64,000 nucleotides of DNA, from contig NC_135763.1 of NCBI RefSeq assembly GCF_052425735.1, positions 7,688,001 through 7,752,000 on the forward strand, given 5' to 3'. The stretch is from Oculina patagonica. Its lineage: Eukaryota. The position numbers and the translations under genes were made by a program. This document shows, in pieces, positions 1 through 64,000 of this stretch. The notes under the pieces are model-generated. The model was not told the origin of the DNA. It did not search any database and worked only from the letters and a program-made list of their open reading frames with translations. How positions within the stretch are numbered: the first letter of the stretch is position 1; each line of letters opens with the position of its first letter.

Positions 1-3000
1 TTGAAAGAGTATGATGGAGTTGTCGCAGATATTCCTGAAAATGTACTTCCCCTTATGAAGCCATTTACCAACCGGGTAGATGAAACGATCAAGCCTGGTT
101 TGACCATGTTGAACTGGACGTCCCTGAATGTCCACTCCTGTGAGTACCTAGTTAAAAATCCCCAAAAACCTAGTTAACTAGTTAAAAATCCCTGGTTAAA
201 AATCCCAATTTGTGTAAGGCAGATCAGTTGAGTATTTACATCCTTAGCCAAGGAGTTGAACACGTTACTACAACAAACAACAGCTAGGTGGTCAGAATGG
301 GCCTTGAACCTGCGACCTCCAGACTTCAAGTTTGGCACTCTAACCTCTCCGCCATGATGCCTCCATTATCTTGCAATTTTAAGAAAAGTCGCCATGTTAC
401 CTTTTTCTTACCTTGTTTGTTTATCAATCAGAAAAGCTATGATAATAACAGTTCCTTGATACATTTGCTTTATTTACTTTTGTATTTTACATGACAATGA
501 TTGCATTCCTCTTTGCAGATATCAACAGCATTCACAAATCAGTGAAAGGACTTGAAATACTTACAAAAGGGGTACATTTTAACTTTTCTTTTGCAAGGTG
601 CTTTCCTTTCACCTCAGTTTGGTAGTTTTCATTGCAAAAATTTGTGACTTGGATTTAATAAAGCCAACTACGTTGCTCCAAATTAACATGAAGTGTCACA
701 AATCCCATAGTACATCCCGACGTTTATGTTTTGTGTGGAACCCTAGGCTAGTGTGTGAAAAGCCTTGTTTTTTGTTCCCCCTCCCTTTGCACAAACTACA
801 AACATACAGTAGATTCAAATGGATGTTAACTGTACTGTGGAGATACTACCAGTGAACCATGATGGTTGTGACTGAACTCTGTGCTCTCTTAGGTAAAAGA
901 CATGCTTGACTGCCGAATTGAGGCTGTGTTGCAAGACATTGAATTAACACGGCTGTGTGATCTGCCAGAAGATGAAGCTGTCACTGTAGAAGAATTTGTA
1001 AACGTAACTGAACGAACGTGCCAAGAAGCTGCAGAATCTTTGTCAAAGTGAGTTTGCTTTGTGAATTCATTTAGTTCCTTTCTCTATCTGGCTGTTGGGC
1101 ATGCAAAGAGGTTTCATAAACTGATGGTTAGGGAATGTCATCCAGCTTCATTTGTTTTTTACGCCTGCAATGTAATGCCAGCAGCCTTTTCCAGTACAGT
1201 ATACCAAATAGGCTGTCTTAAGTTAGAATCGGTTGGGGAATAAGTTCGGGTGAAGGTTTGGCATAGTTGGTGCTAAAAGATTGGGTGGGGGATGGAGTTG
1301 GTGTTTGGACTAGTTAGTACTGTTAGCTTATGTATGTGTTGATTAGAACCTAACCATTGAGACATCCTGACCCATGCTTGTTGGAAACTTGCCTGAAAAA
1401 TTATTTAATCAATGAATAAATGAATTAAAACCTTTATGTACGCATCCGGGAGGTATTTAGCTTGAACAGAGAAATACAAGTACAGAGGTTTTAAGAGGGT
1501 CTCTCTCTGAAAATGTTGTGGCGGGCCCAAACAGGCAAAATATTTATTGCTCCTAACAAGGCCAGAAAATCATTTTGAATCAAACCAAATCTGTTTTAGT
1601 CCTAGCCTCAGGTAAAGTCTTTCAGTTGCCAGAGTTTCAAGCAAAGTTATTTTTGATGTGAATAAATTGAGTGGGTGGTTTTCAGAGAGACAGCCTCTTA
1701 AGAGTTATTTTTATTGGTACTCAGGTACAACCACTTGGTGGAGTCATCAGTGAACATCCTTCTTCAAACACTAAAAGACAATTTGAAGCCATCAGAATTA
1801 ACAGGTCTTGATAAGGAAAACTACCCGTGTCTGTACCCTGAATCAAAGCAGGCAAAGAACAACAAAGGAAACAGATGTTGGGAGTGCATGCCATGTTGCT
1901 ACTGGAGCTTGTTCATCTTTTTCAATCAGAGATGTATTGAGGCATTGGTGAAATCTAAAAGACAGTCACTGGATGCCATTAAACGTCGCATGCAAGCAGC
2001 TAGCAAACACATCAAGGAGAGCAGTGATACTGATGCTAAATCACCAGCTCTTTTTAAGGTGAGTGCATCTCTTGGTACATGAAAGCTAATTCTTCCTTAC
2101 CAATTCTAGCTTCCTCTCATCTCCTCTCCCTCCCTCCTTCCTTCCGCNNNNNNNNNNNNNNNNNNNNNNNNNNNNNNNNNNNNNNNNNNNNNNNNNNNNN
2201 NNNNNNNNNNNNNNNNNNNNNNNNNNNNNNNNNNNNNNNNNNNNNNNNNNNNNNNNNNNNNNNNNNNNNNNNNNNNNNNNNNNNNNNNNNNNACCAACAA
2301 CCCACCCTCCCTCCGTCCCTCCCTCCCTCCCTCCCTCCCTCCCTCCCTCCCCGCCCTCCTTCCCTCCCCCTTACCCGCTTTCTTCATTTTTGTCTTCCTG
2401 CCTCCATCCCTCTCCCTGCTCCCTCTTTCCCTTATTTCCCTATTTCGTTCATTAAGTCATCTGTATTTCTTCCAGGCTGATATCGTGTTAGAAATTCCAT
2501 CAATAGTAATGAAGCCAAGTTTGGATGACATTCAGCAGGCGTTGAACAAAACAGTCCAGATCATGCTTAAAACAACACAGGTAGGACATCGAAAGGGTCA
2601 AATGTAGGTTGTATTGTGGGCAAATATAAGGCAATATATGAAGTGTATGTCCATGACAATGATTCTACTGTGTCCATTTCCAGACGATGTTTTTGTTTGT
2701 TTCTTTGATGTTTTCATTTAATTGGCATTTTAAGAAATTATTTTTGTTACATAAGAAGCGTAAGTAAAGTTTCCAAATTGGAAACTGCTGTAGCAAGTCA
2801 CATGTGGATCTTAACTGTAAACGTTGAGAGTCCACAGTTGTAATGAAGTTAACAAACTTCTGCCTAGTACAAGGAATAATCTCCTTTCTTTTCTCAATCC
2901 TCAAGAATGTATATGAATGGGAACAACATGGAGTCATTCATCAGCCGCCAATCATTGTCGCAGAAGAAGGAAAAGTTCTCCCTCCTTTGGTACCCAAGTC

Positions 3001-6000
3001 TCTTTACAAGATTGTATCTGAGCACAAGGATGTCACCAAGGTATTTACATTTGTTTTTAGGAGGATGTCTAAGCTCTAAGATAAAAATTACAGTATCTTT
3101 TGAAATAATATGAACTATTAAAACAATGAAATTCTGAATGAATTGTGTGGTTATTTATAACTGCATGTGAACAGTTTAGATTTTAGGTAAATTACAGGTA
3201 TTGTTTTAACTGAAAAATATTGTTATATTTGAAGGTGGTTATTACTTTGAGTTCAGTTGTAAGTTCATTGAAAATGGATGCCACAAAAATTTTGGAGGAA
3301 ATGGACCAGTTCAAGGAACTATGGAATCAGGTAAATTCAATGTTAAATCTGGTCCACATAAGAGCAAACCGGCAAAAACCAAACACAGAATTAAATCTGG
3401 CCAATCACATCAGACATTCACAATGCAATGAATCAATCAGATTTTCAAGTGAAAACACTTGTCTGGTGATAAAATTGATGTGAAGGCACACATGCCACAA
3501 GCCAAGTCACTTATAGTTTTGGCTCTTATACTTAAAAAAACGTTTTCTTTGCTCTGAAAGTGGTTGTTTAGAACTTTATTGTAGGGCTCTACTTTTCAGT
3601 CGGTCAACTGTTAACCACTCTATTATACACATGGATTGAGTATATGAGGTTGTCCTTTATTGAGCGAGTCCATGGGATCGTTAAATTGCAGACTTCATAT
3701 TCATCCTCAGATTCAGATTTTCATTTTATTAATAGTTCGCTTCGATCACCACTTTTTGAACTTTCAGGATCCAAACACAAAAGTCAAGGAGTTCATGGAG
3801 TCCAAGCCATTGCTGTCAGACTTTGATGCTCAGATTAAGTATTATCAGCGCCTGGAAACTCAGATTGAGGAGTTACCTGGAAGTTACCACATTGGCCCTG
3901 TGGAATATCTCACTGACAGAATCAAAGAAGCTTTGGTCAGTGAAACTAAGGCCTGGAAACAGGCATTTGGCAAGGCATTGGCAGAGAAGGTAAGATCTGC
4001 AAGTGGATATGTGTGCTTGATATGTCAATTTTTTCAGTTAGACATTAAAATAGTTTAAAGCCCTGGCCAAACGATAATGCAAGTGGACGCAAGTTGTCCT
4101 AAGTTGAACTTGCGTTCAGACTTGATTGGCTGGCCAAACGGACTAGCAGGTTTACTCGCAAGTGCACACAAGTTGTCAAAAAGGCATTTCAATGCTACTG
4201 CACGCTCTACAATTCAGTACTTGAAGTAAACAGCAAGACTTGCGTTGACTTGCGTTGGGTTGCAGAAGGGCGAAAAACTTGTGTTGACTTGCGTGCAGAT
4301 TTGATCTTGGCCAAAGTCATCACAAGTCATCGCAAGTGCACGCAAGTCCTGGTAATGGAGAACTCAAGTGGACGAAAGATTTTGTCATTTAATGTTAAAA
4401 AGTGATAGTTATGGCATGTGCGACTCTACAGTTCCTGAGTGTATATAATTTTATCAACTGCTCAAAAAATCAGTTGTTTTTGTTGTATTTGGCAGGCAAG
4501 TGCAGACATGGAAGAAATCTTCCTGTTCATTGACAACCTCAACAAGCGACTTGCCCGTGGTATTAAGGATCTTGATGATGTGAGAAGCAGCATGGCTGCT
4601 CTCAGTGAGATAAGAGAGTCTGAAATAAGGTTTGTGACTTGAACTGTGTGATCGCAAGATACTATACTTAGAGACTTAACAGAAACGAGAACTGGAAATA
4701 TCAACAGGAGCTTTAAATTGGGAAATCATTCTAGTATCATAGTTTAAGAGAAGACAGTGGCGTCTTGTTGAAATCTGTTTCATTTGCTGTGAGGGAGACA
4801 TTAAAGTTATGAGCTCAAGAATTCCACGGCGAAAATGTTGAAATATGGAGGCCTGTGTTGTGTCTTCGACTAGTTTTTTTTAAGTGCATGGAAAGTCATC
4901 ACCAAGTAACATCCAATCCTTGACACTAAATGGATCTCTGTAGTGCCACACCGTCAGTATGTATCAGTATCACAAAGTCTCTCTTGAAGGGAATGGAAAT
5001 CAAAGGTCTGTCATTTACTTGAAAACCTGCTTAGAATTGCCTTTGAATATATATAGTGCCAACGTTTTTTCAAAATCAGCCGATAAATCGAAAGAGATTG
5101 CTGTTACCAGTTACCATTGGATGGTTGTCTCAAAGAAGACCAAAAAGCTGGGAAACTGGACAAGATACAGACATTTCTGGCATTCTGATTAACTGGCAAA
5201 GAGGAATGCCTCTGCACGTATTCCAGGATTTTCTACCAGAATTTGGACCATTTGATTTTCAATGAAAATTTCCATTTTTTGTCAAATGATAAGCACCCGA
5301 GATCACTGAGATGTGTTATCAGGCTTGTCAGATTTAAAAGAGTCATGTCTCACAGTGAGAGTTAATTCCTATAAACATGCTACAAATGTTACATTGTCTA
5401 AGATATGTTATTTTTTGCTACAGGATTGACATGACAATTGGTCCAATCGAGGAATCGTTTGCTATGATGAATCGCTATGGCCTTGTTTATTCAAGCAGTG
5501 ATGCTGAAAGAGTGGATGGTCTTACCTATGCTTGGCGTAAATTGCATGCGCAGGTATTTGAGGCCGTTTGCTGAGGCCTATAGAAAACCTTGGAAGTCAT
5601 GAAATTTTAGAATTTCATTTTCCAGGCTGGAAAGTCATGGAATATAGGTGTGGGTCATGGAAAGTCTTGGAAAGTGGTATTGACTGTACAAACAAAATTA
5701 GGCAGGTTATTTTTTGTGAAGAAAAGGGTAAAAACGTACTCGAACTCAAGATAATGTTTGAAAATTTCCAAGAAAAATGGTCAAAGAAAAAAGAAAAGGG
5801 TAAAAACGTACTCGAACTCAAGATAATGTTAAAAAGTCATGGAAAAGGTCATGAAAAGTCATGAAATTCCAAAAGCTTAAAAGAGTACAAACCCTGTCTC
5901 TTAGATACAAATGGCCTCAGTGTATAACTACATTAAACTCCAAGAGGTATATCATCTTTTTTGGTCAGAGTTTCATCTCCTAATAATAAATGAAGACATC

Positions 6001-19800: not shown

Positions 19801-22800
19801 TTTGAGCACTGATCAGCTATTATAGAACTAAAATATCATAATAACGGCTTAAATCTGTATTAGAACTCAAAAGAGACGCACAAAAAGCCACGAAGGGGCA
19901 TGGGTGGATAAAATTGGGGAAGATTAAAACAGATTACACTGACTGGGGTAAACTTGAAAAACGTCGGCCAAACTTTTCAAGTTTATTTCAGTCTGTATGA
20001 AGATGTCATTTTAACTGCGCGGAAAACATCCTTGTTTGTTAAGTGGTCGTGATATTGCCAGTAAAAGAATGTCGCTCTGCCAATTTTAAGTTTAGAGCTT
20101 ATATTTAAAGTTCTAACTAATCAGGATTATTAAAAAATCCCGGGAACTAGCCCCTTTAACCTTAGATCCTTTCACGATTGTCTTGTACAAGACATTTGTA
20201 CGGGGAACTTTCCAGTATTGTAGCAGCTCTCGTAAGCTTGTTATTCTACTGGTCCTCTAGTGTAGCAGTTGCCATTGTTTTTGGGGCTAGGGGCATTGTT
20301 TCCTGCTGTTTGTTCTATTCCGCTTTTTCATGGTAACAAATCTCCATGTAAGACCTTGCGAGGGCTACTTCCTGATCAGAAATTTCTGTCGCTAGGACAC
20401 TCGTTCATTTCTTGTTATGATGTTACCAAATTAAATGATCTGTCTGGGTCCTTGTCAACTGAAATAACTGATTGCTACAAAAAGCATTGTAAATTTGGAT
20501 AATCCGTTAAAACTCAGCAAAGTTGTGGAACTTCATAGGGCGTAAATTATTTCAAAGTGTGTTATGATGGAAGTCTGATAACTTTTCTTTGTTGTTCACC
20601 AGTTGTATGAAACCCAGCGTGTCCGACACGGAATGATGGCCCTGGGGCCTAGCGGTGCAGGCAAGACGAAGTGTATTAACATTCTAATGAAGGCCATGAC
20701 ACAATGCGGGGCGCCGCACAAGGAGTTCCGTATGAATCCCAAGGTAATTAGCTAACGTATCAGTGATATCTTAGGTTCGATGCCTGCCTTTCGTTGTCTA
20801 GTTGCCTCCAAGTTAAAGTAGTGCACGGGGCTTTTTTGGTAATAGACACCTGGGAGAACAAATAATGTTGCTGGTAAATCTTCGTGAAAGTGTTAAAAAC
20901 TTACCGATTCCTATCTCAATACAAATGTAACATAGAAGTTAATTATCCCATTCATCGTTCAGCAAACGATTTGCATGATGTTGCATAATTTTCTTTAGAA
21001 AAGCTCCTTGCGAAGAGTTTGAAGTCAAAATGCGACATCCAATGGCCAAACGTCTATCTGAAGTTTCAAACTTTAGACCAAAAATTGAAACCTTGAAAAC
21101 AGCTGGAGTAAACATGTGGCTATCATTCTTAGTCAACAATCCCTGATTTTTCTCTGTCTGAGATGAACAAGGCCATTTGGTATCTGTAGTGTCCCTGGTA
21201 TTCCCTATACGGATTCAAACGCTTTCTAGGAGTCAAACAGAAAAAAAAAAATAGTGACGCAAACTCGACTTCCTTCTGCATACCACTTTATAATCCTTAG
21301 TTAGTAACACTGTTTCTTGCACCAGGCCATTACAGCACCTCAGATGTTTGGTCGACTTGATGTTTCAACCAATGACTGGACTGACGGAATCTTTTCCACG
21401 TTGTGGAGACGAACTTTGAGAGCAAAGAAGGTGACTATGTATTTATTTTGTTTTCCATTACTACGTACAGAGATGAGTCTAAAAAGACTCGCGGCACTTT
21501 CCCAGCCAATAAGAAGAAAAACCAAAACTAATCGTGATTCGCTCACGCACGTTTTTTCGCACTTGGTGCCAGCTACGTGTATTTGCTTCAAGTTTTGATT
21601 GGTTCACTGGATTGACAGTGGCCTTTGTGATTGGCCAGAGTGATAACTTTGGTTTTTGTTTTACTACACTCAATTGAAAACTGCTCTGTTCACTTTTCCC
21701 AGGGAGAACACATCTGGATTGTTTTAGACGGCCCCGTGGACGCCATCTGGATCGAGAACCTCAACAGTGTATTGGACGACAACAAGACGCTAACACTGGC
21801 AAACGGCGATCGTATTCCAATGGCACCCAACTGTAAAGTTGTGTTTGAGCCTCACAACATTGACAACGCTTCACCCGCTACAGTGTCAAGGTAAAATTTC
21901 AATTTTACGTTTGGAGTAATTTGCACTAGAGAGCTAACTGTGTGAACCACTAAGAAGTATTGTGATTTGAATCAAATATAGCACTGTGAAATTCGTACTT
22001 ACGTTTCTCGTTGTATTATGACAAACCAAAAATTTTGTCTTCCTAGGGATCTAGCCGTATTGTTATGCAGTCGTTTGTGTCAATAACGTTTAATATATGT
22101 TTGTTGTTTTAAATGATTTGTTTTTTCTCCAAGAAATGGTATGGTGTACATGAGCTCATCTGCTCTGGACTGGCGGCCCATCTTAGAGGTACGCTTCGTT
22201 ATTGCTGTTTTAACATATATACCAATATGTGTAGAATAAATTTTGTTTTCCTCAAGAAGCTAGTTGAGGGTCTTGCAACCATTAAGAATTCGTCAAAAAG
22301 AACGAACTTACAAGAGACCAAAAACAAAAGTTATCGTACTTTATGTTTCTTCTTACCTTACGTCCCTTTCTAACGCAAACTAAACGAAGTTTTTTTTTTC
22401 ATTCCCAGGGATGGTTGAACACGCGCCCTCAACTGGAGAGAGACGTCCTTTTCCCGCTGTTTGAGAGCGTTTTTGACGAATTGAGGACATTTGTGATTCA
22501 GAATTGTTTTCCAAAGATGGAAGTAAGTGACTAACCGCACTTTTGCTACTTACCGTAAATCTGGAAGGTTTAATTTCAGCAAGGATAGCCTGAGTCAAGT
22601 TTCTTTTCGCCACTGACACTCGATAAACGCATGGAATTCTACCCCAAAAATTCCACACTGAGATGTAATCCCGCCGAAATCGTGTAATGTTTTGGATTGG
22701 TTGGCGCGAAAATTCAAAACTGAGTGACAATTAATCAGCGACGCTACATGCATTGAGCTACGTCATCAATATGATAGATTTCTTGTCCAATCTCAGACAT

Positions 22801-25800: not shown

Positions 25801-28800
25801 CATTTTACTCTCATAGTGCCTCTTTCCACCCAGGTGTATAAATGGGTACTGGCGAATTAACTGCATGGGGTAACCCTGTGATGGACTAGCATCCCATCCA
25901 AGGGGGAGAAGAAAAACTCCAAGTCGCTTCATGCTACAGATACCGGTATAAGCTCCAGCCTGATAGGCCATCGGGCCCGAACGCAGACTTGACCATTTTT
26001 ATCCTGCCTATCTGCCCCAGAAACATTTGTAAGGTAGCATTTATGTCAGATCACGAACGAAATTGTCATACAAGTTACCTAATATTGTGTAATTGCGCCC
26101 AGAAATACTCGTAACGATAAAGTTTTTACTTTTTGTCAGATCACGAACGAAATTGTGAGACAAGTCATGGAAATGAAAGGATTCTACAGTCTTGACAAAC
26201 CGGGAGACTTCACCAACATTGTGGACATTCAATTTGTTGCAGCCATGATCCAACCCGGTGGAGGTCGCAACGACATACCAAGTCGACTCAAACGTCAGTT
26301 CACCATCTTAAACTGCACGCTTCCTGCAAATGCTTCCATCGACAAAATCTTCAGCTCCGTCGGTTGCGGCTACTTTAACACCGAGCGCGGTTTTTCTGAT
26401 GAGGTGCAGAAAATGGTAAACCCTTTGGTTTCGAGCACCAGGAAGTTGTGGCAGAAGACAAAGGTTAAGATGTTGCCGACACCAGCCAAGTTTCACTACA
26501 TTTTCAATTTGAGGGATCTTAGCAGAATCTGGCAGGTATGAAACAGAACGCTATGTGAATTTGCGCTTTACAAGAGCTGGCATTTAGTTTTGCAAGCTAG
26601 ACACATTGTCAATCACAATACACATGAATAGCGTAGCAAATTACCAATCAGATCTCTAAGCTTAAACGTGCCACCGATGGCATGTCTGGGAAAGTTGCGT
26701 AAGGCACACGATTGATTTGAAGCATGTTTCGCTGAACACGCTCTGTGTTTTGATTGGTAAAATCACACTGCACGAGTTTAGCGGCGAACAAATTACCGAG
26801 ACATTAAAAAGATCAAAATTGAAGTAGACAGATCACTAAAGTGATCTTGGAAAAATTATCTGTTAACTCGACTAAAACTCCAGTTGTACTCTTTACGTCT
26901 CGTTGTTGAAAACAACCCCCACAAAAACAAAACAAAATAATTAAAAGAAACCAAAAACAAAGCAAAACAAAAGAAAAAACAACAACAAGAAGTGTTGGAT
27001 TCAAAAATCGTTTTCTTTTTAGCTTTCGTGGTTTCGTTCTGAGCATCAGTTCTTTGTTTGAGAGGCACGTACTTTGCAAACACCCTTGTGTATTACATTT
27101 ACCATAAGTGACGTTCATTTGACATAAGTGACGTTCTTATAAAGAGTTGAAGTTTTTTAAGTGAGCGAGAAAAAAAATTTCAGGTAAGATTTCTTTGAAA
27201 TCTATCACCAGGGCATGTTGACTGTGACGTCTGAAGTGGCCACAACTCCCGCCATACTCCTGAATCTCTGGAAACACGAGTGCAATCGAGTTATTGCCGA
27301 TCGCTTCACGAACCAGCAAGACAAGGATTGGTTCGAGAAGACGCTAAGACAGCTTATCGAGGAAGATTTTGATGCGGACACAGCCAGCTTAATGGATGCG
27401 GAACCCTACTTTGTGGATTTCTTGAGAGATGCCCCAGAACCAACTGGTATGTCAGATGTATTAGCTGTGAAAAAGCAAAACAAAAAAACAATAGCTGTGA
27501 TAGTCCTAAGAGTAGACTCAGATTACTCAAAACCTGTATCACCCGATTTTGAATTTTCGCCCTAAAGTAAAAACCAGTCAGAGACTCTAAACCTGTATTA
27601 CCCGATTTTAAATTTTCACGCCAAAATTAAATCCGTTCCGAGTCACCACGCAGATCTTTGTTCAACTTCGTCATCAGTATAGAATTTTTACTTAAATTTC
27701 TGACGTTTCTCTAGATTGAGCGCGCAGAGAGACGTGTTTGTTTACTTAGAGTATCGCTAGAGTAAAGCCCTCATTATTTTGTAAGGGTAGCGTTGTTAAA
27801 ATAATTGTAAGTACATGGTCCTTTTATTCTAAAACATACATAGACTGTGACGTGTGTGTGTAACATAAGAACATGATTGAATGATTTAAAAGCCGCTTAA
27901 TATCCGTAAAGAAGAAACTGGTTGCCTTTTGTACAGGCTTTTTTGTGTTACTATTTGCATTTGTAGCATTTTGTCAACTAGAATATTCAACCCAAAGCAG
28001 CAAGTAACGATCACAAAGTCAGTTGTAAACAGGTTCATTGATTTGTTCACTTGTCCGCTTTTATTAGCACCACAATTTCTTTAGAGACTTCTCACAAGCT
28101 CGACACTCTATGCTGCTCTTTCAACAAAGTGTTTTCAATTTCAGTACCCTACAACGCTTTTTTTCTATCATTACTCTATTTAGTTTCGTGCCAAGCTCGA
28201 TATTGAGCCTTGCCCTCTAACCTACACTTAGTCCCTACAATTCTTCACCACTTCCTTCCTTAAATCTTATGTTATTTACCAAGACCTTAAACTGTTGTTT
28301 GCAGTTGTTAACTTTTCTTTGTGTCATTGGCATCTCTTCTTGTTCTTTTCGTTCACATTTTCTCTCCAGTAATCGTTGGAGAGGAAAGCAAAGATAACAA
28401 AGGCAAGAAGGATGGCAAAGCTGGAAAGCAGAAAGGACCCGTGAAAGGTTCTACTGCCGGGCCAAGGGGCCCAGGTAAATGTACCTGCCCTGGTCTTACT
28501 ATTCTATTTCTACTAATTCTTGTCTGTTTCTGACACAGCACAGGAACTGAACTGGTTTCACCATCTTGTGTCTTTAAATGTTCTGACAAATCTACTCTAA
28601 GAATATGTCCTCTTAAAAACCAGAAAAATTAACGTTCCAACATCTTGTGTTTTTAAATGCTCACTATCCTTCTCTAAGATTGTCTCCTGTCAAAAACCAG
28701 AAAAATTCACCTTTCAACATCTTGTGTTTTCAAATGTTCACTCTTTCCTATTCTAAGAATATCTCCTCTCAAAAACCATAAAAATTCACGTTCCAACATT

Positions 28801-31800
28801 TTGTGTTTTTAAATGTTCACTCTATCCTTCTCTAAGATTGTCTCCTCTCAAAAACCAGGAAAAACTACGTTACAATATCTTGTTTCTTTTAATGTTCCTT
28901 CTTTCCTACTCTAAGAATATCTCCTCTCAAAAACCAGAAAAATTTACTCCTACTCGTAGAATTATTAGAAGCTACTCTCAATCCTGTTTACTATATTATC
29001 TCTTTCTTAAAGGTTCACACAAGTCCTTTCTAAGATCAGAATATCTTAACTTTGATTCATCCCTCCCAACAAGAATTTTTTCCTGCCCAATCCTCCCTTT
29101 TCAATACCTCAATAAGCTTTCAAGCGTTAGAATCGTTAGCCTCTTGTGCTGCCATCAATTTTGCTCATAATGGTATCTCTCTCAGTCTTTAATTGTGCAC
29201 ACGGCACCATACACCAGCTGAGACGTTTGTTACCTGACTCCTGGCCGTGAGGGTTTATTGGGTCCTCTCAGCCATCTTTTCAGTTCTTCTCAACTTTCTA
29301 AATTCTTCTTTAATCTCTTGTTTTGTATGCTATTGTCTAATATTGTGCCCTTTTTACCCTCAGTAAGCTATCGTGCTTAAGCACTGCATCATCAAAGACT
29401 ATCTGATGTTCTCGCTTTTCGTCTGTTGGCGAAACTTGACGAGTTTTCTTTCTTTATTTCGTGTTACCGGCCAGGAGTGGCACTTAATCAAATTTTGCGT
29501 CCGCGGAAAAAAACAGATGGATAGTACTCGTCCGTGAATTTTTTTAAAAAACTAACGGGCCTACAGACAGAAAAACCCCACTAAAGTCACTGCATTGAGT
29601 GGGTTTCTTGTCTGGTTTTGTTTTGTTTGTTAAATTTCGGCTTTCCAAGGTTTTGTGCCTCTGAGAATTGAAGGGGGTGGGTCATAATCAAAATTGTACG
29701 GTACTTCACGTTGGTGTAAACTAGCTTAAGGAGCATCACTAAACCTGTTTGACTGGCTGCAGGTGATGAGCCCGAGGATGCAGACCTCGAGGCACCAAAG
29801 GTCTATGAACCTATCGTGTCACTAGATGGTCTCAAGGAGCGGCTGGGAACCTTCATGTTAAGCTACAATGAAATGGTCCGCGGAGGTCACATGGACCTTG
29901 TGTTTTTTAAGGTACAGATCTTATCATTATTTCGTGTCTTGCACGTTTCGAGCCTCGATTTTAACATAAAGATGGCTCTAACTTTTAGGTCTGTAGATGA
30001 AACCCTTGTGTGTGACCATTTAAATGAAAGCTATTGAGCAGTACGTTCATGTGATACTGTTAATTGTGCTCTGATAGACGGCTGTAACTTCTACTTGCGC
30101 CTTTCAAAAGCAGAAGATATGCGTGCGTTGATATGTGTGATATATGTTGAGCAGTTCTTTTACGTGATACTTATACCTAATCGTACCTTTTTGGTACGCT
30201 TCGGCGGCATATCAGGCGAGTTTGGTCGAGCCATGGTTCGTATTTTGGCGAGACGCAGTCGAGCCAAAATACCCATGGCGAGACCAAACGAGCCTGATAT
30301 GCCGCCGAAGCGTACCAAAAAGGTACTATTAGGTATTTACCGTACCCAAATTCAGCCAAAACTCCGGTGATATTATTCGCTCTGTTGAAGCCATGCTTGC
30401 CAGACACGTAGTGCAAAATGTGTTGACCTGCTTGTATTGATACTTTTTTGGTCTTCAACACTTTTATCAAGTCCTCTTCTCACATTTTTTTACTCGTTTG
30501 TTTGGAGTTTCATTCCCTAAATTTTCAAAATCCAAATTTAGCGAAAAATTTAGAAACTCCGACTCCATTGTTTCAGTGTGAATGTTTCAGTACTCGTCGG
30601 CAAACATCGCGCAATTGGCGAGCGCGCTCAAGTTTAGTTTTGGCGGGAAAGTTTTTCTCATTTTACGACCGGTAAGCACCAGTTAATTAAAAATACTCGT
30701 TTCTGTTTTATTGGTAAAACCTCTTTTCAATTCATCGTACGGAAACACTACTTTAATTTAAAGTGACCGTGATATGGTGGCATATCAGGTCAGTGACTTG
30801 ATATCGTAGGATATCAGGACAGTAGATCGCGCTTCTGATTGGCTACTTGCGAATTTGGGTACGGTAATGTTTATTATTCGGTAAAAGGTGGCTCTAACTT
30901 TTGCTTTCGCCTACCAGGGCAGTAGATTTCTGAGTTATGATAGCAGTTTTAATTTTCTCTTTCACCATGCATTACACACGTTTTACATCCCCAATGTTTA
31001 TCTTTCTAGGATGCCATGGTACATCTTGTCAAGATTTCTCGCATAATCCGCACTCCTCGAGGTAACGCTTTGTTAGTGGGCGTGGGAGGCTCAGGCAAAC
31101 AAAGCTTGACGCGACTGGCTTCATTCATTGCTGGATATAATATTTTCCAGATCACTTTGACAAGGTAAAATAAAAGAGATACTGAGATAAGTTATCATGT
31201 TTTCAAAACAAGACTGCTTACATCACGAGAATTGTAACTAGGCATTTTCAGTGAGGTTTGGTTGAAGTTTTATTTTGTACTTCAATGGTTATGTGGAGTA
31301 CAAAGACTTTTTTAAATTTGTTTTATTCACAAAACGAAACACTACGACGCCATAACTTATAACTTATTTGCTTTCCAGGTCCTACAACGTGTCTAACTTG
31401 ATGGAAGATCTCAAAGTACTGTACAGGACTGCTGGACATCAAGGAAAAGGAATCACGTTTATATTTACAGACAACGAGATCAAAGATGAAGGGTTCTTGG
31501 AGTACATGAACAATGTGATAGCTTCAGGAGAGGTGTGGCGAGTTTTTCAGACTATAACATTTCATTGTTACACTAGCCTATGTAACATCTCTGTTTAGCT
31601 GCCGCGAGATAAGTTGGACGAGTTATACTTAGTGTAACACCCCTTAGCCTGCGTCGCAGACGAACGAAACCCCGGTATTGTCAAATACCGAGATTTTGTG
31701 ACACGTTCAGCTGCAATGCAGGCCAACACCCCTAGGCGATGTGTAAAAAAATTGTTGCAGCCTTGCCGTTAGGCTCGATTTCCAGCCTTGCCGTAAGCGT

Positions 31801-37402: not shown

Positions 37403-40400
37403 GCTAGTAGGTGACGTGTTACTGGCGACTGGGTTCTTGTCTTATTCTGGTCCGTTTAACCAGGCGTTCAGAACTCTGTTGCTTGACAACTGGAAGAAAG
37501 AAATGAGAAAAATGAAGATTCCTTTCTCAGAGGTAATGCTTTAGGAAAACGAAAACAGAACAAGAGTTAACGGGTATCCACAACTTATCTAGTTAATATT
37601 TTTCTGCAATCTAACAATAGTCGAGTGCCTTGATTAGTAATGCTCCATCGCAAGATTATTTCCAACGAAAAACGCCCAAACTCAAAACAAGAACTTTAAT
37701 GATTTTTCACGACTATAATCGACGTTATTGTTCTTGTTGCGTAGTTGCATTTCTTTATTTGCCTTTGATTCGTATAATTGTCGGTTTAGAATACAGTAAA
37801 CACCCGCATATAAGAACCTATGATTTTGGATTCAGGCTGATCAAGTTCTTATTTACCGGGTGCTTAGTAAAAAATCGGCCTGAAAATGTTCTTAAAGTGT
37901 TCTTAAAATTCGTTTCAGAAATACTACACATTATACATTACAAGAGATTAAAATAAGATACAATGTTTTATTACTTACTCTTAAAAATTAGTTTCAAAGA
38001 AATGAATACTATTACTAATATAAGTATGCACACCATAGTACTTTAATTTGAGTTACTTTCTTATTCTGGCATCCTGCTTCTTTTATATAAGAACATATAT
38101 ATATATATATTTTTTTATCAGGCTGTATTGATTCTTATAATTATATATATTGTGCTCTATTGGCTAACTTTCAGCCTGATGTTCTTAATCCGCTTGTTCT
38201 TATATGTGGGTGTTAACTGTATCTGCATAAGTAATGATAGACCTAAACTAGTGTTACAATATTCTTTGTGTCTTTGCAGGATTTGAATCTAGTGAACATG
38301 CTTACAGATGCTGCTACGATTGGCGAGTGGGCCCTTCAGGGATTACCTAGCGATGAGCTGTCAGTTCAGAATGGTATAATCGTCACCAAGGCTGCACGGT
38401 ATCCTCTTCTTATTGACCCTCAGGTGAGATATTGTCTACCAGTTCTTAAGGTGAACTGCAACATCTGAAATAAAGGGAATGCGTCACGGGTTTTAGCCAA
38501 ATTTAGGCATGGTAAAGGACCATAAAATTCGGTGAAATTTAAAAATAACCTCTTAAAACAGTGAAGGAACATTCCAATAACACGGTAAATACAAAAGAAG
38601 GTACGAATGGCCAAAAGTGACGAAGACTGAAACGGATTGCGATTTGGGTTTTTGAAATATTGTTGGGCTGAACTGTTTTCAAAGTTTATCTCGTTTGCCT
38701 GTAATTTTTTATAACGCCTAGGAGAAAAATTTGGTTGCAATGAAGCTATGGTTTTGTCATTTAGATCCATAGAAGTAATTTCTTTGCAAACGTTTAGTTT
38801 CATAGTGAGTATTTGTAAAAACCTGATAACTCCAAATTAGGTTCGCCACAGAAATTCGGTTCAGTCTTGTTATGTTCATTTCCACTTTTCATTCGTTGTT
38901 TATGATAATGCTCTACAAAATTTGTTCTGTTTGAGCTTTAGTGTTGTTTGCTATAGAAAGAAACAAATCGTTTATTGTTGAAAGTGCTTAGCTTTTCCGC
39001 CAGAATTGACTTGATCTTTAAGGTAATGGCTTTACTCTTGTCGCGCCGTGCTACAGTTGCGTTTTCAAAAGCAAAATTTCAATTTAAAATGGCGTTATTT
39101 ACTCAATTGCTTAATATTACTCAGGGCCAAGGAAAAGCGTGGATTAGAAAGAAAGAAGGACCGAACGAACTGCAGGTGGGTTTCACAAATTATTTATGTT
39201 TTGAAATATTAATTGCCGTTACGGATTGCTGCACATTTACTGCTAAATCTTGACTTCTTGACATTTTGAAGCATGTTTCGTTTGCAGGACACTTGACTCC
39301 ACAACTTGACGTGATTGCAAAAGTACACATTTGCATTTCGCATCGGATGGGGCAACTTTTTTACGCCCACTTAAGACACTTTTTGTTTTAATTTTATCAA
39401 AGTGGGAAAAGGATAATGTTAAATTTAAAGTGCGCCGTGGTGATTTCGTAAATTTAACTAGATAACGTGTTACTCTTAACGAAGTGCATAACCGAAGGAA
39501 ATAGTAGAGGGTCTCAATGGGATTAACCGTTAGCCGTAAAACGGCCAAAAAATTAGCCGTTAGGCGTAAAAAATGGAAAATTTTAACCGTTAGCCGTAAA
39601 ATGTGTTAACCGTAAAAATCAGTCAGTGATTATCAATAACCCAAACTAGTTCACTTCATCGTCCCAAAAATGGTCCAAAGACCTAAAATACGTTTTTCAA
39701 TAATGGAAATTGATTTTTTACTATTAAAAACAATGATAAATAACTTTTAACTTCTGTTAACCGTAATGGAAATAAATTAACCGTTAACCGTAAAAGCCCC
39801 CACCCCATTGAGACCCTCATAGTAGGCTAACCGGTTACTGCTGACGGCCATCTTGAAGTGGGCGTAATAAAATTGCCCGGATCGGTGTGAAATGTGGCAG
39901 GTACCATCCCTTTTAAAACAGAGAATTTGGCAATTTAGTGAGATGTTTTGTGAATTTTTAATTCCAGGTCACAGCTCTCAACCACAAGTACTTCCGAACC
40001 CATTTAGAAGATTCGCTCTCGTTAGGAAGACCGCTGATCATTGAAGATGTTGGTGAAGAGCTTGATCCTGCGCTTGACAATGTACTGGAGAAAAACTTCA
40101 TCAAATCTGGAAAGACGTTTAAGGTGAGCATGCGCGTTTCATGATACTAATGTTGATTAACATAACGTTCGTAATTTGGCATAGTCCTTTAGTTTTCGTT
40201 TTTATAACTTATTTTAAGCTCTTTCTTTTAAAATGTGGCAAGAATTACAAAAATAGCCTCTTAGCCCATTGTGATCTTCTGCTTGGGTGCACCAAACTAT
40301 AGAAGGCCTTATTATAATACCTTATTACATGACACACTGTGTCGCCAAAATTTAACGATTTTGAAAAATCTGTATTAAGCGGCCCTTTGATTTAGCGAGT

Positions 40401-61085: not shown

Positions 61086-61553
61086 TTTTCTCTGTGAAAA
61101 CAAAAATGCGTTTTTATGGTGTCTCCTAACCTGTAGGAATCGCAACGTTTCATATACCAAATGATTAGAAATATATTTAAAATTTAACACGTAAGGTTTA
61201 GTCTCTATAATTAGGACATAATTTATTACCAATCGGAGGTTACATCCAGAATCATAGTAGAAACATTTTTATTGGTATGCTGTACAAATTTGGCACATGT
61301 GAAGATACTAAAATATGGGGTGAAATAACTTACGCGCATGCCAAGAAGTGCAGGAATTAAGGTTTCCGTCGCTAGGAGCTGGAGGGGAGGTGGGTGGCAA
61401 ACAGAAGCCTCGACCACACTCTCGGTGCATGAACGCACCTGTCATGATATATGTGTTACGTCACTCGTAATCACGTGTTCTTTCAATAAACATGGCATGG
61501 TGTCAGATGTGGTAGATTCAAACACAGTTTGAACTACAAAAACCTAGCTCAAA

Positions 61554-62180
61554 ATGAGTGTATTCAAGCCGCCCTCAACGCTAAGTCTAGAGGGAAATGT
61601 TGCAGAAAACTGGCGTAAGTGGAAACAGCGATTTCAACTGTACATGGAAGCTTCAGGATCAATGAAGAAACCCGAGAAGCAACGTCTCGCCATATTTCTT
61701 CATCTCGTGGGAGAAGAAGCACTTGAGATTTACAACACATTTTCATTGTCGACCGCGGAGCAAAAGCTCGACGTCCTATTCCAGAAATTTGAGGACTATT
61801 GTAATCCGAGGCGGAATATCACATTTGAACGGCACAAATTCTTCACCTGTGTTCAGGAACCGACCGAAGGCATCGACCAGTATGTAACCGAGCTGCGCAC
61901 CAAAGCAAGCACGTGCGAATTTGGCGTACTGTGTGAAAGCTTAATTCGAGATAGAATCGTTTGTGGAATACTTTGCGACACTATGAGAGAAAAGTTATTG
62001 CAAGAAAACGATTTAAGTCTTCAGAAAGCCATTGATATGTGCAGAGCGTCGAGTTTTCCAAACGCCAAACGAAATCGATCACCGAAGAATCGAAGAGTGT
62101 AGATTATGTAGATAAGAAAGCTACGCCGAGTGGCAAATTCCCGCCAAAGGACAGAAAGGATAACTCAGAGACTCAAAGGA
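61554..62180 (+). pseudogene. Gypsy gag N-terminal part with a 1-nt frameshift near 62048
   Basis: ENWRKWKQRFQLY...FERHKFFTCVQ...IRDRIVCG...LSLQKAIDMCRA continues in another frame as VEFSKRQTKSI. Confidence 0.85.
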
Positions 62181-63600
62181 CAGTGCAGAATGCATTATGG
62201 CCAATCAATCGACAGCATGATAATAATTTTCCAGCGTAATTTCTCTTGAGAATAAGTCAAATGAGTTCACCTTTCAGTTCAGTATTGAAGCAGCAAATGT
62301 GATATTTGTGCTTTTCGTGCAAAGGTTTGTAACATGATACCTTTGTTTTTCTCTTAGACTGCTATGATGCGTTTAAGTCTAATTAAATTAACGCCACGGA
62401 TTCTACAAGAATCATACCGCATTGTCTCATTCAGCATTAAAATTACAAATTTTCAGAACAGTGCACGAGCAGAGCACAAACTATGAATTACAAAGCATAA
62501 AATGTCGAAATTGCGACTTTTCCCCCGAAATTGCCGCTAAAAATTGCGGCTTTTTCCCCGAAATTGTCGCTATTTTCGTGCGCCAGATCATGCTCTCGCC
62601 ACGGTCTGGTGAACACGTCACACGCAGAGAAGCCGAGAAGCACGTAGTGTGAAGATTTATTTCAAGAAATGTCGGAACCGTCACGAAAGCATGTTCAAAC
62701 AACTTAAGAGGCAGAGGTTTTACAAAATAAAACGGAGAACCGATGGAAAGGAAGTGACGGATGTAATATAATACTGTTGCTTTTCTCGCAGATCGCTGTG
62801 ATGCCTTTTAAGTTTAATTAAATTAACGCCACGGATTCTACAGGAATTCTACCGCATTGAAACGCACACCACGTTAGGCTTTAATACAAAATTTCTAAAC
62901 ACGTCCCTGTTATTTTAATTTTCGATAGCTTGAATTTCAGTTTGATATTGAAACAGCAATGAGATACTTTCGTTTTTGTCAAAAACATGTAACATTACAC
63001 TTTTGTTTTTGTCGAAAACGGATGTAACATGATGATATGGTAACGTGATTTATTTTCTTCAAACAAGGCGACATTGATTAACACAGATATTATCAATTGA
63101 TTATGAGATGCTAGATCACCTTTTCTAAGAAAACAGCGTTGCCATATCAAGAATTATTTCACATGAACTACTATGACGCCTTAGTGTTTAATTCAATTAA
63201 TTCGTGGTTTTAACTTGGCGCCACGGAGTCTACACGAATCCTTCTGCAGAAGAAACACGCAATGTTCGTGATGTAGACTGATCTGCGCATGCGTTTAGCA
63301 CAAAGTATTTTGTTCCAGAAAGAACTGTACCACAAGGAGAGCGTAGTGCTTTCTGAAACAAATATATACCTTGAGTTCTTCAATTGTAAGTATCGTAAAT
63401 ATACTCCCCGTTTTATCAAGGGCACAAGGTCAGGTTCTCTCCATCCCCTCCCCCCTTTACAAAAATAATTAATTAATTGATATTAATTAATTAATTGATG
63501 ATTAAAAGTTTACACCGCGTTAGCGGTTTAGTGGCTTAGTGGTTTAGGGGTTTAGCAGACGCCAACCCACCAAACCATCACAATAGTGCATTCTGCACTA
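62181..63600 (-). mobile_element. 1420-bp insertion in gag, Helentron/HINE-like non-autonomous element
   Basis: 13-bp inverted ends AGTGCAGAATGCA, terminal hairpin TAGTGCA-TTC-TGCACTA, GGTTTAG-like microsatellite, internal duplications, no TSD; removal restores the gag frame. Confidence 0.7.
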
Positions 63601-64000
63601 AAAATGACCAGTCGAAGACAAAAAATGGAATCCAAAAGGCATGCAAGCGATGTGGAACACTTCATGCACCGAGAAAATGTCCAACTTATGGAAAAATCTG
63701 TCTCAAATGCAAGAATCGAAACCACTTCGCATCTCAGTGTCTCACGAAGAATGTTCATTTAGTGGAAAGCAATCAAGCCGCTCAATTTATTGTTGAAGAC
63801 GAGCAGTTAGAAGAGTTATTCATCGGTCAAGTCCAGAAAGATGACCATGGGCAAGAATGGAAAGCATCTCTTCAAGTGAACAACAACATGGTAGAGTTTA
63901 AATTGGATACTGGAGCACAAGCAAATGTAATTCCATCGGATGTATTCAACTCGCTCAAAGGAACACCGCAGCTGAAGACAACTAAAGCAAAACTCACTGG
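63601..64000 (+). pseudogene. Gypsy gag zinc knuckles and aspartic protease (runs off the window)
   Basis: CKRCGTLHAPRKCPTYGKICLKCKNRNHFASQC ... VEFKLDTGAQANVIP. Confidence 0.9.

Follow-up and report, generated by a model that had tools for sequence, protein, structure and literature searches.

Does the motor ring of an outer-arm dynein contain, in some organisms, an optional segment encoded by an exon that the bulk of the mRNA leaves out? The question is raised by a stretch of 64,000 nucleotides (nt) of the forward strand of the Oculina patagonica genome (assembly GCF_052425735.1, contig NC_135763.1, positions 7,688,001 to 7,752,000; hereafter "the window", whose internal numbering is used throughout), which carries a gene for an axonemal dynein heavy chain and, inside one of the introns of this gene, a 105-nt segment, 28370–28474, referred to below as the cassette. 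The results presented here indicate that the cassette is likely to be a real and conserved alternative coding exon, in all probability specific to a coral lineage from which nine species were sampled, and that the predominant mRNA skips it. As a sense-strand exon it has been maintained for its reading frame and, more loosely, for the character of the peptide that it specifies, while being skipped in the main mRNA.

The intron that hosts the cassette spans 27447–29762 (2316 nt) and constitutes the widest gap between dynein exons in the window. The upstream exon ends with ...GATGCCCCAGAACCAACTG at 27446, followed by GTATGT; the cassette is entered through an acceptor reading ...TTTTCTCTCCAG/TAATCG (28369/28370) and left through a donor reading GGCCCAG/GTAAAT (28474/28475). 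Together with the split-codon G of 27446, the cassette specifies 35 residues uninterrupted by stop codons, after which GDEPED is resumed in frame. Its purine content is 70–72%, the highest of any 105-nt stretch of an intron that as a whole has 43%, and the 70 nt that precede it are 74% pyrimidine. All these properties of the island, i.e., its boundaries, its polypyrimidine tract plus CAG and its CAG/GTAAAT donor, its phase, the lack of stops, its purine-richness and its location in the largest dynein intron of the window, had been reported in a preliminary description made from the letters alone, and are in exact agreement with the sequence, its composition and the gaps between exons.

When approximately 37 kb of intronic sequence of the host gene were scanned for AG..GT segments of 60–200 nt, multiple of three in length, having a YAG acceptor with at least 80% pyrimidine and a donor agreeing with the consensus in at least 8 of 9 positions, the cassette emerged as the sole candidate; these thresholds were chosen after the cassette had been seen, and the result is taken as supportive only. 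At both the DNA and the peptide level the cassette is single copy in the 529-Mb genome, which rules out a transposon fragment, and neither strand of 27400–29800 yielded an Rfam match at E values up to 1, by which an Rfam RNA or another intron-hosted small RNA (small nucleolar or other) is likewise ruled out.

The coding-exon interpretation is argued for, above all, by the comparison with the orthologous intron taken from eight other coral genomes (L002–L009, one of which is a scaffold from a Tara coral metagenome). When proteins were searched with the open stretch of 73 residues, this led to one open reading frame (ORF) of another genome (P0001), and a search with the upstream exon read through into the intron led to many genomic ORFs of related genomes, the contigs of which gave L002–L009; a further contig (L010), which stops inside the intron, stayed outside the comparison. 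In all eight relatives the intron is in phase 1, follows ...PEPT/G and measures 1.7–2.6 kb. The synonymous divergence of their flanking exons from those of the window ranges from 0.47 to ~1.9, a level so high that neutral sequence should be unalignable in the distant pairs; indeed, in these pairs the intron cannot be aligned except for one island, corresponding to 28260–28511 of the window, which is present in every species. When ~20 kb per species were compared among the more distant relatives, the cassette block proved to be the only conserved island without a counterpart in DNAH5, the remaining islands being either ordinary exons or repeats that map out of order (non-syntenic). An internal control is offered by three islands that tblastn with vertebrate DNAH5 had missed: 22132–22220 and 22394–22543 translate as ordinary dynein exons (DNAH5 ~2392–2437), and 39107–39200, which falls where the DNAH5 match lacks residues, is for this reason taken to be another. 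By this control, islands conserved in these introns are exons.

Within the island, conservation follows the outline of an exon. A pyrimidine tract with a YAG acceptor on one side and a GTA donor on the other coincide exactly with the boundaries of the block in each of the nine species, the donor being GTAA in eight of them and GTATAA in L008. The exon lengths (105, 105, 102, 99, 99, 93, 87, 108 and 102 nt) are without exception multiples of three, and the dynein phase is free of stop codons throughout the nine. The changes in length consist of 2-, 3- and 6-codon deletions in the Lys-rich middle, of 1-, 4- and 2-codon insertions and of a 1-codon deletion near the start, implying at least six or seven separate events, every one of which involves whole codons, whereas the gaps directly outside the AG and the GT of the cassette include some of 1 and 2 nt. 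A tenth genomic ORF (P0258) is in the dynein frame too, with yet another length.

Conservation extends to the immediate surroundings of the cassette. Unlike the rest of the intron, the upstream flank 28260–28369 can be aligned in L002–L005, with 72–86% identity, and in these species TTTTCTCTYCAG is retained; in L003–L005 the alignable portion comprises ~110 nt on the 5′ side and ~35 nt on the 3′ side of the cassette, and in L002, the nearest relative, downstream conservation reaches ~28634. A tandem repeat (28555–28944; five copies of a 79-nt unit with 81% matches) lies directly 3′ of the conserved flank; the array is found at no other place in the genome, and L002 has one unit (L002:10374–10453). 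The cassette has no counterpart in mammalian DNAH5 and DNAH8, there is no insert at its site in distant metagenome dyneins, most of which are contiguous across the junction, and the intron of a more distant animal relative (L011, 68% exon identity) measures 450 nt and holds no cassette candidate.

Selection on the codons is likewise frame-specific. With four phylogenetically independent pairs pooled, the dynein frame has a ratio between the proportions of nonsynonymous and synonymous differences (pN/pS) of 0.52 (one-sided Fisher p = 0.002), as compared with 1.5 and 1.0 for the remaining sense frames; when the nucleotides were aligned without reference to the peptide, the corresponding values were 0.57 (p = 0.011), 1.2 and 1.0. 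The peptide retains V(I/L)VGEE as its hydrophobic/acidic beginning, NKDGKAxK in its Lys-rich middle and VGPRGP at its end, and the net charge of the insert is +2 to +6 in eight of the nine species and 0 in L009. The insert is of low complexity and probably disordered.

Where in the protein would this insert reside? The host gene is assigned by homology to the DNAH5/gamma-type outer-arm axonemal dynein heavy chains: 55 tblastn segments of P0153, a vertebrate-type DNAH5 protein of 4624 residues, are arranged collinearly in the window and span residues 1147–4624, the C-terminus being reached at 54088, and the best match in the PDB is DNAH5. The upstream exon (27209–27446) matches residues 2802–2881 of human DNAH5 (8j07; E 2.5e-24), and the downstream exon (29763–29912) residues 2886–2931 of the same chain; the two exons also match residues 2908–2986 and 2988–3036 of a DNAH8-like chain (9fqr), with no residues missing. 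Since the upstream exon corresponds to Pfam AAA_lid_1 (PF17857) and exon 31010–31165 to AAA_8 (PF12780), the start of AAA4, the cassette site is the connection between AAA3 and AAA4. Furthermore, since the form that lacks the cassette is collinear with both DNAH5 and the DNAH8-like chain, the cassette is an addition and not a constitutive exon of the family that had been missed.

The acceptor of the downstream exon is also unusually conserved over 29733–29762, where branch-site-like TCACTAAAC is followed by CTGTTTGAC...CAG, the pyrimidine tract being short in most species; a CTAAAC-like motif and CTGTTT are found in most of the nine species, and YAG/GTGA at 29762 in all of them. The conservation of this region may bear on the choice between skipping and inclusion. 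Mutually exclusive use of the cassette and the downstream exon is ruled out because the latter encodes a conserved part of the motor.

Other statements of the preliminary description have also withstood comparison. The seamless joining of the flanking exons at the AAA3–AAA4 site of DNAH5 is borne out by the DNAH5 and DNAH8-like matches and by the Pfam domains, and the basic loop placed beside an acidic stretch by the Lys/Gly/Pro-rich basic character conserved in eight of nine species. The frame and the splice sites, for which it had looked to related species, are kept in all nine, and for the dN/dS analysis that it proposed, pN/pS has come out at 0.52–0.57 in the dynein frame as against 1.0–1.5 in the other sense frames.

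Evidence at the RNA level comes from the contigs of four runs (X1–X4), a form of data that drops minor transcripts. The skip junction 27446→29763, with GT..AG ends, is contained in long contigs of X3 (organism B, depth 102) and X4 (organism A, depth 34), and the dynein contigs of these two runs have nothing over the cassette; skipping is the dominant form in both. X1 and X2, which originate from one study of organism A, share with X4 the spliced unitigs at 27209 and are thus recognized as RNA. Genome-collinear, unspliced contigs are found in these two runs over the cassette block and the repeat behind it, covering 28300–28649 in X2 (depth 19) and 28481–28867 in X1 (depth 21, with 23 unplaced letters at the low end, to the left of 28481); the rest of the intron has depth 0, and the depth of ~20 resembles that of the dynein exons. 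In addition, X1/X2 contigs overrun the 27446 donor by 24 nt, to stop or diverge at exactly 27470. A GT at 27467, located 20 nt into the intron, could account for this run-on as an alternative donor, but it is not conserved in the other species and would shift the frame. The X1/X2 pattern could reflect a slowly spliced (detained) intermediate around a regulated exon, an overlapping RNA or haplotype differences. A separate element of the same intron, 29548–29645, has a summed depth of 576–1534 in all four runs; many different contigs contribute to this signal, with 3–6 mismatches and with flanks that differ from one to the next. The element matches nothing in Rfam and looks like a multi-copy transcribed repeat family.

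Several observations weigh against the cassette being a coding exon. In X3 the dynein exons have a depth of ~100 and the cassette a depth of 0, so that inclusion there amounts to a few per cent at most. The inclusion junctions 27446→28370 and 28474→29763 occur in none of the contigs of the four runs. No spliced inclusion protein was retrieved from a collection of 5.8 billion proteins with either the 73-residue stretch or a nine-species cassette profile, these searches returning only the unspliced genomic ORFs P0001 and P0258, and a degenerate pattern for the junction between cassette and downstream exon had no match in the contigs of the Joint Genome Institute (JGI). The blanks in the protein and JGI collections carry little weight, since no coral transcript-derived forms of the gene were seen there at all: a control pattern for the skip junction met no coral transcripts but only distant dyneins, most of which read across the junction without a break and all of which lack an insert. 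The collinear contigs of X1 and X2 are left unaccounted for by a cassette exon. As to the codons, the ratio of nonsynonymous to synonymous rates (omega) is 0.2–0.66 in the cassette versus 0.02–0.13 in the flanking exons, indicating a loose constraint on the peptide, which fits a disordered loop; and the antisense frame that shares third positions with the dynein frame is open in all nine species with a pN/pS of 0.60, as is to be expected in purine-rich sequence where third positions coincide, so that the strand cannot be told from the codon test alone. What sets it are the splice signals, together with the abrupt change in indel pattern at the AG and the GT; a minus-strand exon was rejected for want of splice signals in that orientation, the open antisense frame (pN/pS 0.60) notwithstanding. 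The alternatively spliced isoform postulated in the preliminary description, which was to be recognized from its junctions, is therefore upheld in part: the skip junction in the contigs of X3 and X4 and the conservation of the exon in nine species speak for it, and the inclusion junctions have appeared in neither the runs nor the collections.

What else could have kept such a block in place? A conserved non-coding splicing element, i.e., a decoy exon or regulatory pseudo-exon that controls removal of the intron and never enters a translated mRNA, would account for the conservation of both splice sites and of ~100 nt of upstream flank as well as for the inclusion junction not being seen, and a detained intron could be reflected in the unspliced X1/X2 contigs (28300–28867, ~20 depth) and in the run-on past 27446. 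A decoy, however, needs neither a length divisible by three nor indels confined to whole codons (at least six events), neither a frame that is open in nine species nor a frame-specific pN/pS of ~0.5, and the zero depth of X1 and X2 over the rest of the intron is not that of plain intron retention; we hold this explanation to be unlikely. To assign the block to another transcript overlapping the intron (an antisense or nested RNA), its agreement with the dynein phase being coincidental, appears very unlikely. The intron has no second conserved island that might serve as a partner exon, the signals at the edges are an acceptor and a donor of the sense strand and do not constitute splice sites on the minus strand, frame-breaking indels of 1–2 nt begin right outside the AG and the GT, and for an unrelated exon the fit of length and open frame to the phase of the host intron would be a coincidence of about 1 in 9. 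These points stand against the collinear coverage of 28300–28649 and 28481–28867 in X1/X2, against the antisense frame that is open in all species (pN/pS 0.60), and against the fact that the depth of the block is unrelated to that of the dynein exons (~20 versus 8–25 in X1 and X2, 0–2 versus 34–144 in X3 and X4), all of which speak in favor of such a transcript.

It is also true that purine-rich sequence is poor in stops, that open frames come cheaply in it and that in several species two or even all three of the sense frames are open, as might be anticipated for a chance pseudo-exon, i.e., an open purine-rich stretch that happens to lie between an AG and a GT. Nevertheless, 37 kb of intronic sequence contain no other candidate of this kind, and the splice sites of the cassette and its lengths divisible by three are conserved across species saturated at synonymous sites; the nine-species comparison effectively refutes a product of chance, which we regard as extremely improbable. 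A recursive-splicing exon was rejected as well, the junctions (G/TAATC, G/TCATC, G/TTCTC, G/CTTTA, etc.) re-forming no conserved GT-consensus donor and the intron being only ~2.3 kb long.

We thus favor a lineage-specific alternative coding exon, and it seems probable that in some cell type or stage the cassette is included and translated. How might such an exon operate? The main mRNA joins 27446 directly to 29763 and leaves the cassette out. Since the pyrimidine tract is strong and skipping nevertheless prevails, repression by way of the CU-rich sequence upstream may be suspected, and we propose, with low confidence, that a factor acting on the long conserved tract 28260–28369 might impose it in the manner of PTB. 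Inclusion would lengthen the chain by a basic Lys/Gly/Pro-rich loop of 29–36 residues, with the AAA3 lid on its N-terminal side and the acidic stretch that precedes AAA4 on its C-terminal side. There the loop might modify an electrostatic contact that the ring makes through its AAA3/AAA4 surface, a step in which our confidence is equally low; more speculatively, the charged loop could alter a contact used for the docking of a regulator or fold back on the neighbouring acidic stretch. That the loop tunes contacts with tubulin tails or regulators, with different use in sperm flagella and epithelial cilia, as conjectured in the preliminary description, is a guess. The complete scenario, in which a regulated isoform of the main outer-arm dynein with a basic, disordered loop of ~30–36 residues in the AAA3–AAA4 rim would have persisted in stony corals over perhaps hundreds of millions of years, to be used in particular ciliated cells (e.g., sperm flagella or larval cilia) and thereby to alter contacts with acidic partners or regulators and the beat, is possible but must be considered doubtful.

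The features of the locus are collected in the following table, together with the peptides predicted at the junctions of the inclusion form.

Features of the cassette and of its surroundings (positions in the window)
Feature	Position	Strand	Remarks
Constitutive upstream exon	27209–27446	+	End of the AAA3 lid and first base of a split Gly codon; donor ACTG/GTATGT
Conserved CU-rich upstream intronic flank	28260–28369	+	Pyrimidine tract and YAG acceptor of the cassette
Candidate cassette exon	28370–28474	+	105 nt, phase 1-1, 35 codons; basic Lys/Gly/Pro-rich insert
Cassette donor GTAAAT and conserved downstream flank	28475–28511	+	From alignment with relatives
Acceptor region of the downstream exon	29733–29762	+	Conserved branch-site-like TCACTAAACCTGTTTGAC...CAG; short pyrimidine tract
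Constitutive downstream exon	29763–29912	+	Contains VFFK; acidic stretch leading into AAA4; spliced onward at 29912
Predicted junction peptides of the inclusion form			...DAPEPTV(I/L)VGEE... and ...VGPRGPGDEPED...

Elsewhere in the window, two long open frames are found on the plus strand (61548–62099 and 63540–63998), 3′ of the last dynein exon, which ends at 54088; one of them holds a zinc-knuckle-like CxxC...HxxxxC, which hints at a gag-like remnant of a retroelement. A run of 145 N at ~2150–2290, representing an assembly gap or a mask, has on its flanks a simple repeat rich in Pro, Ser and Leu.

Each gene for an axonemal dynein heavy chain is usually regarded as making a single invariant protein, and paralogues, light chains and phosphorylation are held responsible for tuning the ciliary beat. 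If an optional exon is indeed conserved in the ATPase ring of a DNAH5-type chain, isoform switching would join these means, and attention would be drawn to the rim formed by AAA3 and AAA4 as a surface through which outer-arm dynein is regulated. Homology-guided annotation based on vertebrate proteins cannot find the cassette, and for this reason coral gene models, as well as sperm or larval proteomics, may be missing the exon.

How does this element compare with known systems? Human DNAH5 (8j07 chain n0) and the mouse DNAH8-like chain (9fqr chain I3) belong to the same gene family and offer the same position as the coral gene, but these mammalian chains continue straight through the junction without an insert, the coral cassette being an addition found in the sampled coral group only. 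The kind of feature, a conserved frame-preserving alternative exon, is well known; its location has, as far as we know, no described example. Literature searches found no described counterpart insert in a dynein AAA ring and we know of no alternatively spliced one. If confirmed, a regulated loop isoform would provide the first known case of an insert introduced into the motor ring of a dynein by alternative splicing.

The closest parallels are provided by other motors. Alternatively spliced surface loops are present in the smooth-muscle myosin heavy chain, with its 7-residue loop-1 insert, and in non-muscle myosin IIB, with its B1 and B2 inserts. Like the cassette, these inserts are specified by a short, optional, frame-preserving exon, fall in a flexible loop of a catalytic motor domain and are absent from the default isoform; they differ in belonging to another motor superfamily and in that inclusion, tissue specificity and kinetic effects have been demonstrated for the myosins, whereas the coral insert is known from genomes. 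The K-loop of the kinesin-3 KIF1A is Lys-rich, constitutive and situated on the microtubule-binding face. As a Lys-rich flexible insert on a microtubule motor it resembles the coral insert, which could similarly attract acidic partners such as tubulin tails; unlike the K-loop, however, the coral insert would be optional and would lie well away from the stalk tip, on the rim that AAA3 and AAA4 form in the ring.

Finally, the surface formed by AAA3 and AAA4 is a docking site for Lis1 on cytoplasmic dynein and for LC3 on the outer-arm Dyh4 ring of Tetrahymena (bioRxiv 10.1101/2020.11.30.404319). Lis1 and LC3 are separate proteins and dock on other heavy chains, but the region of the ring that they occupy is the same as that in which the coral insert would reside.

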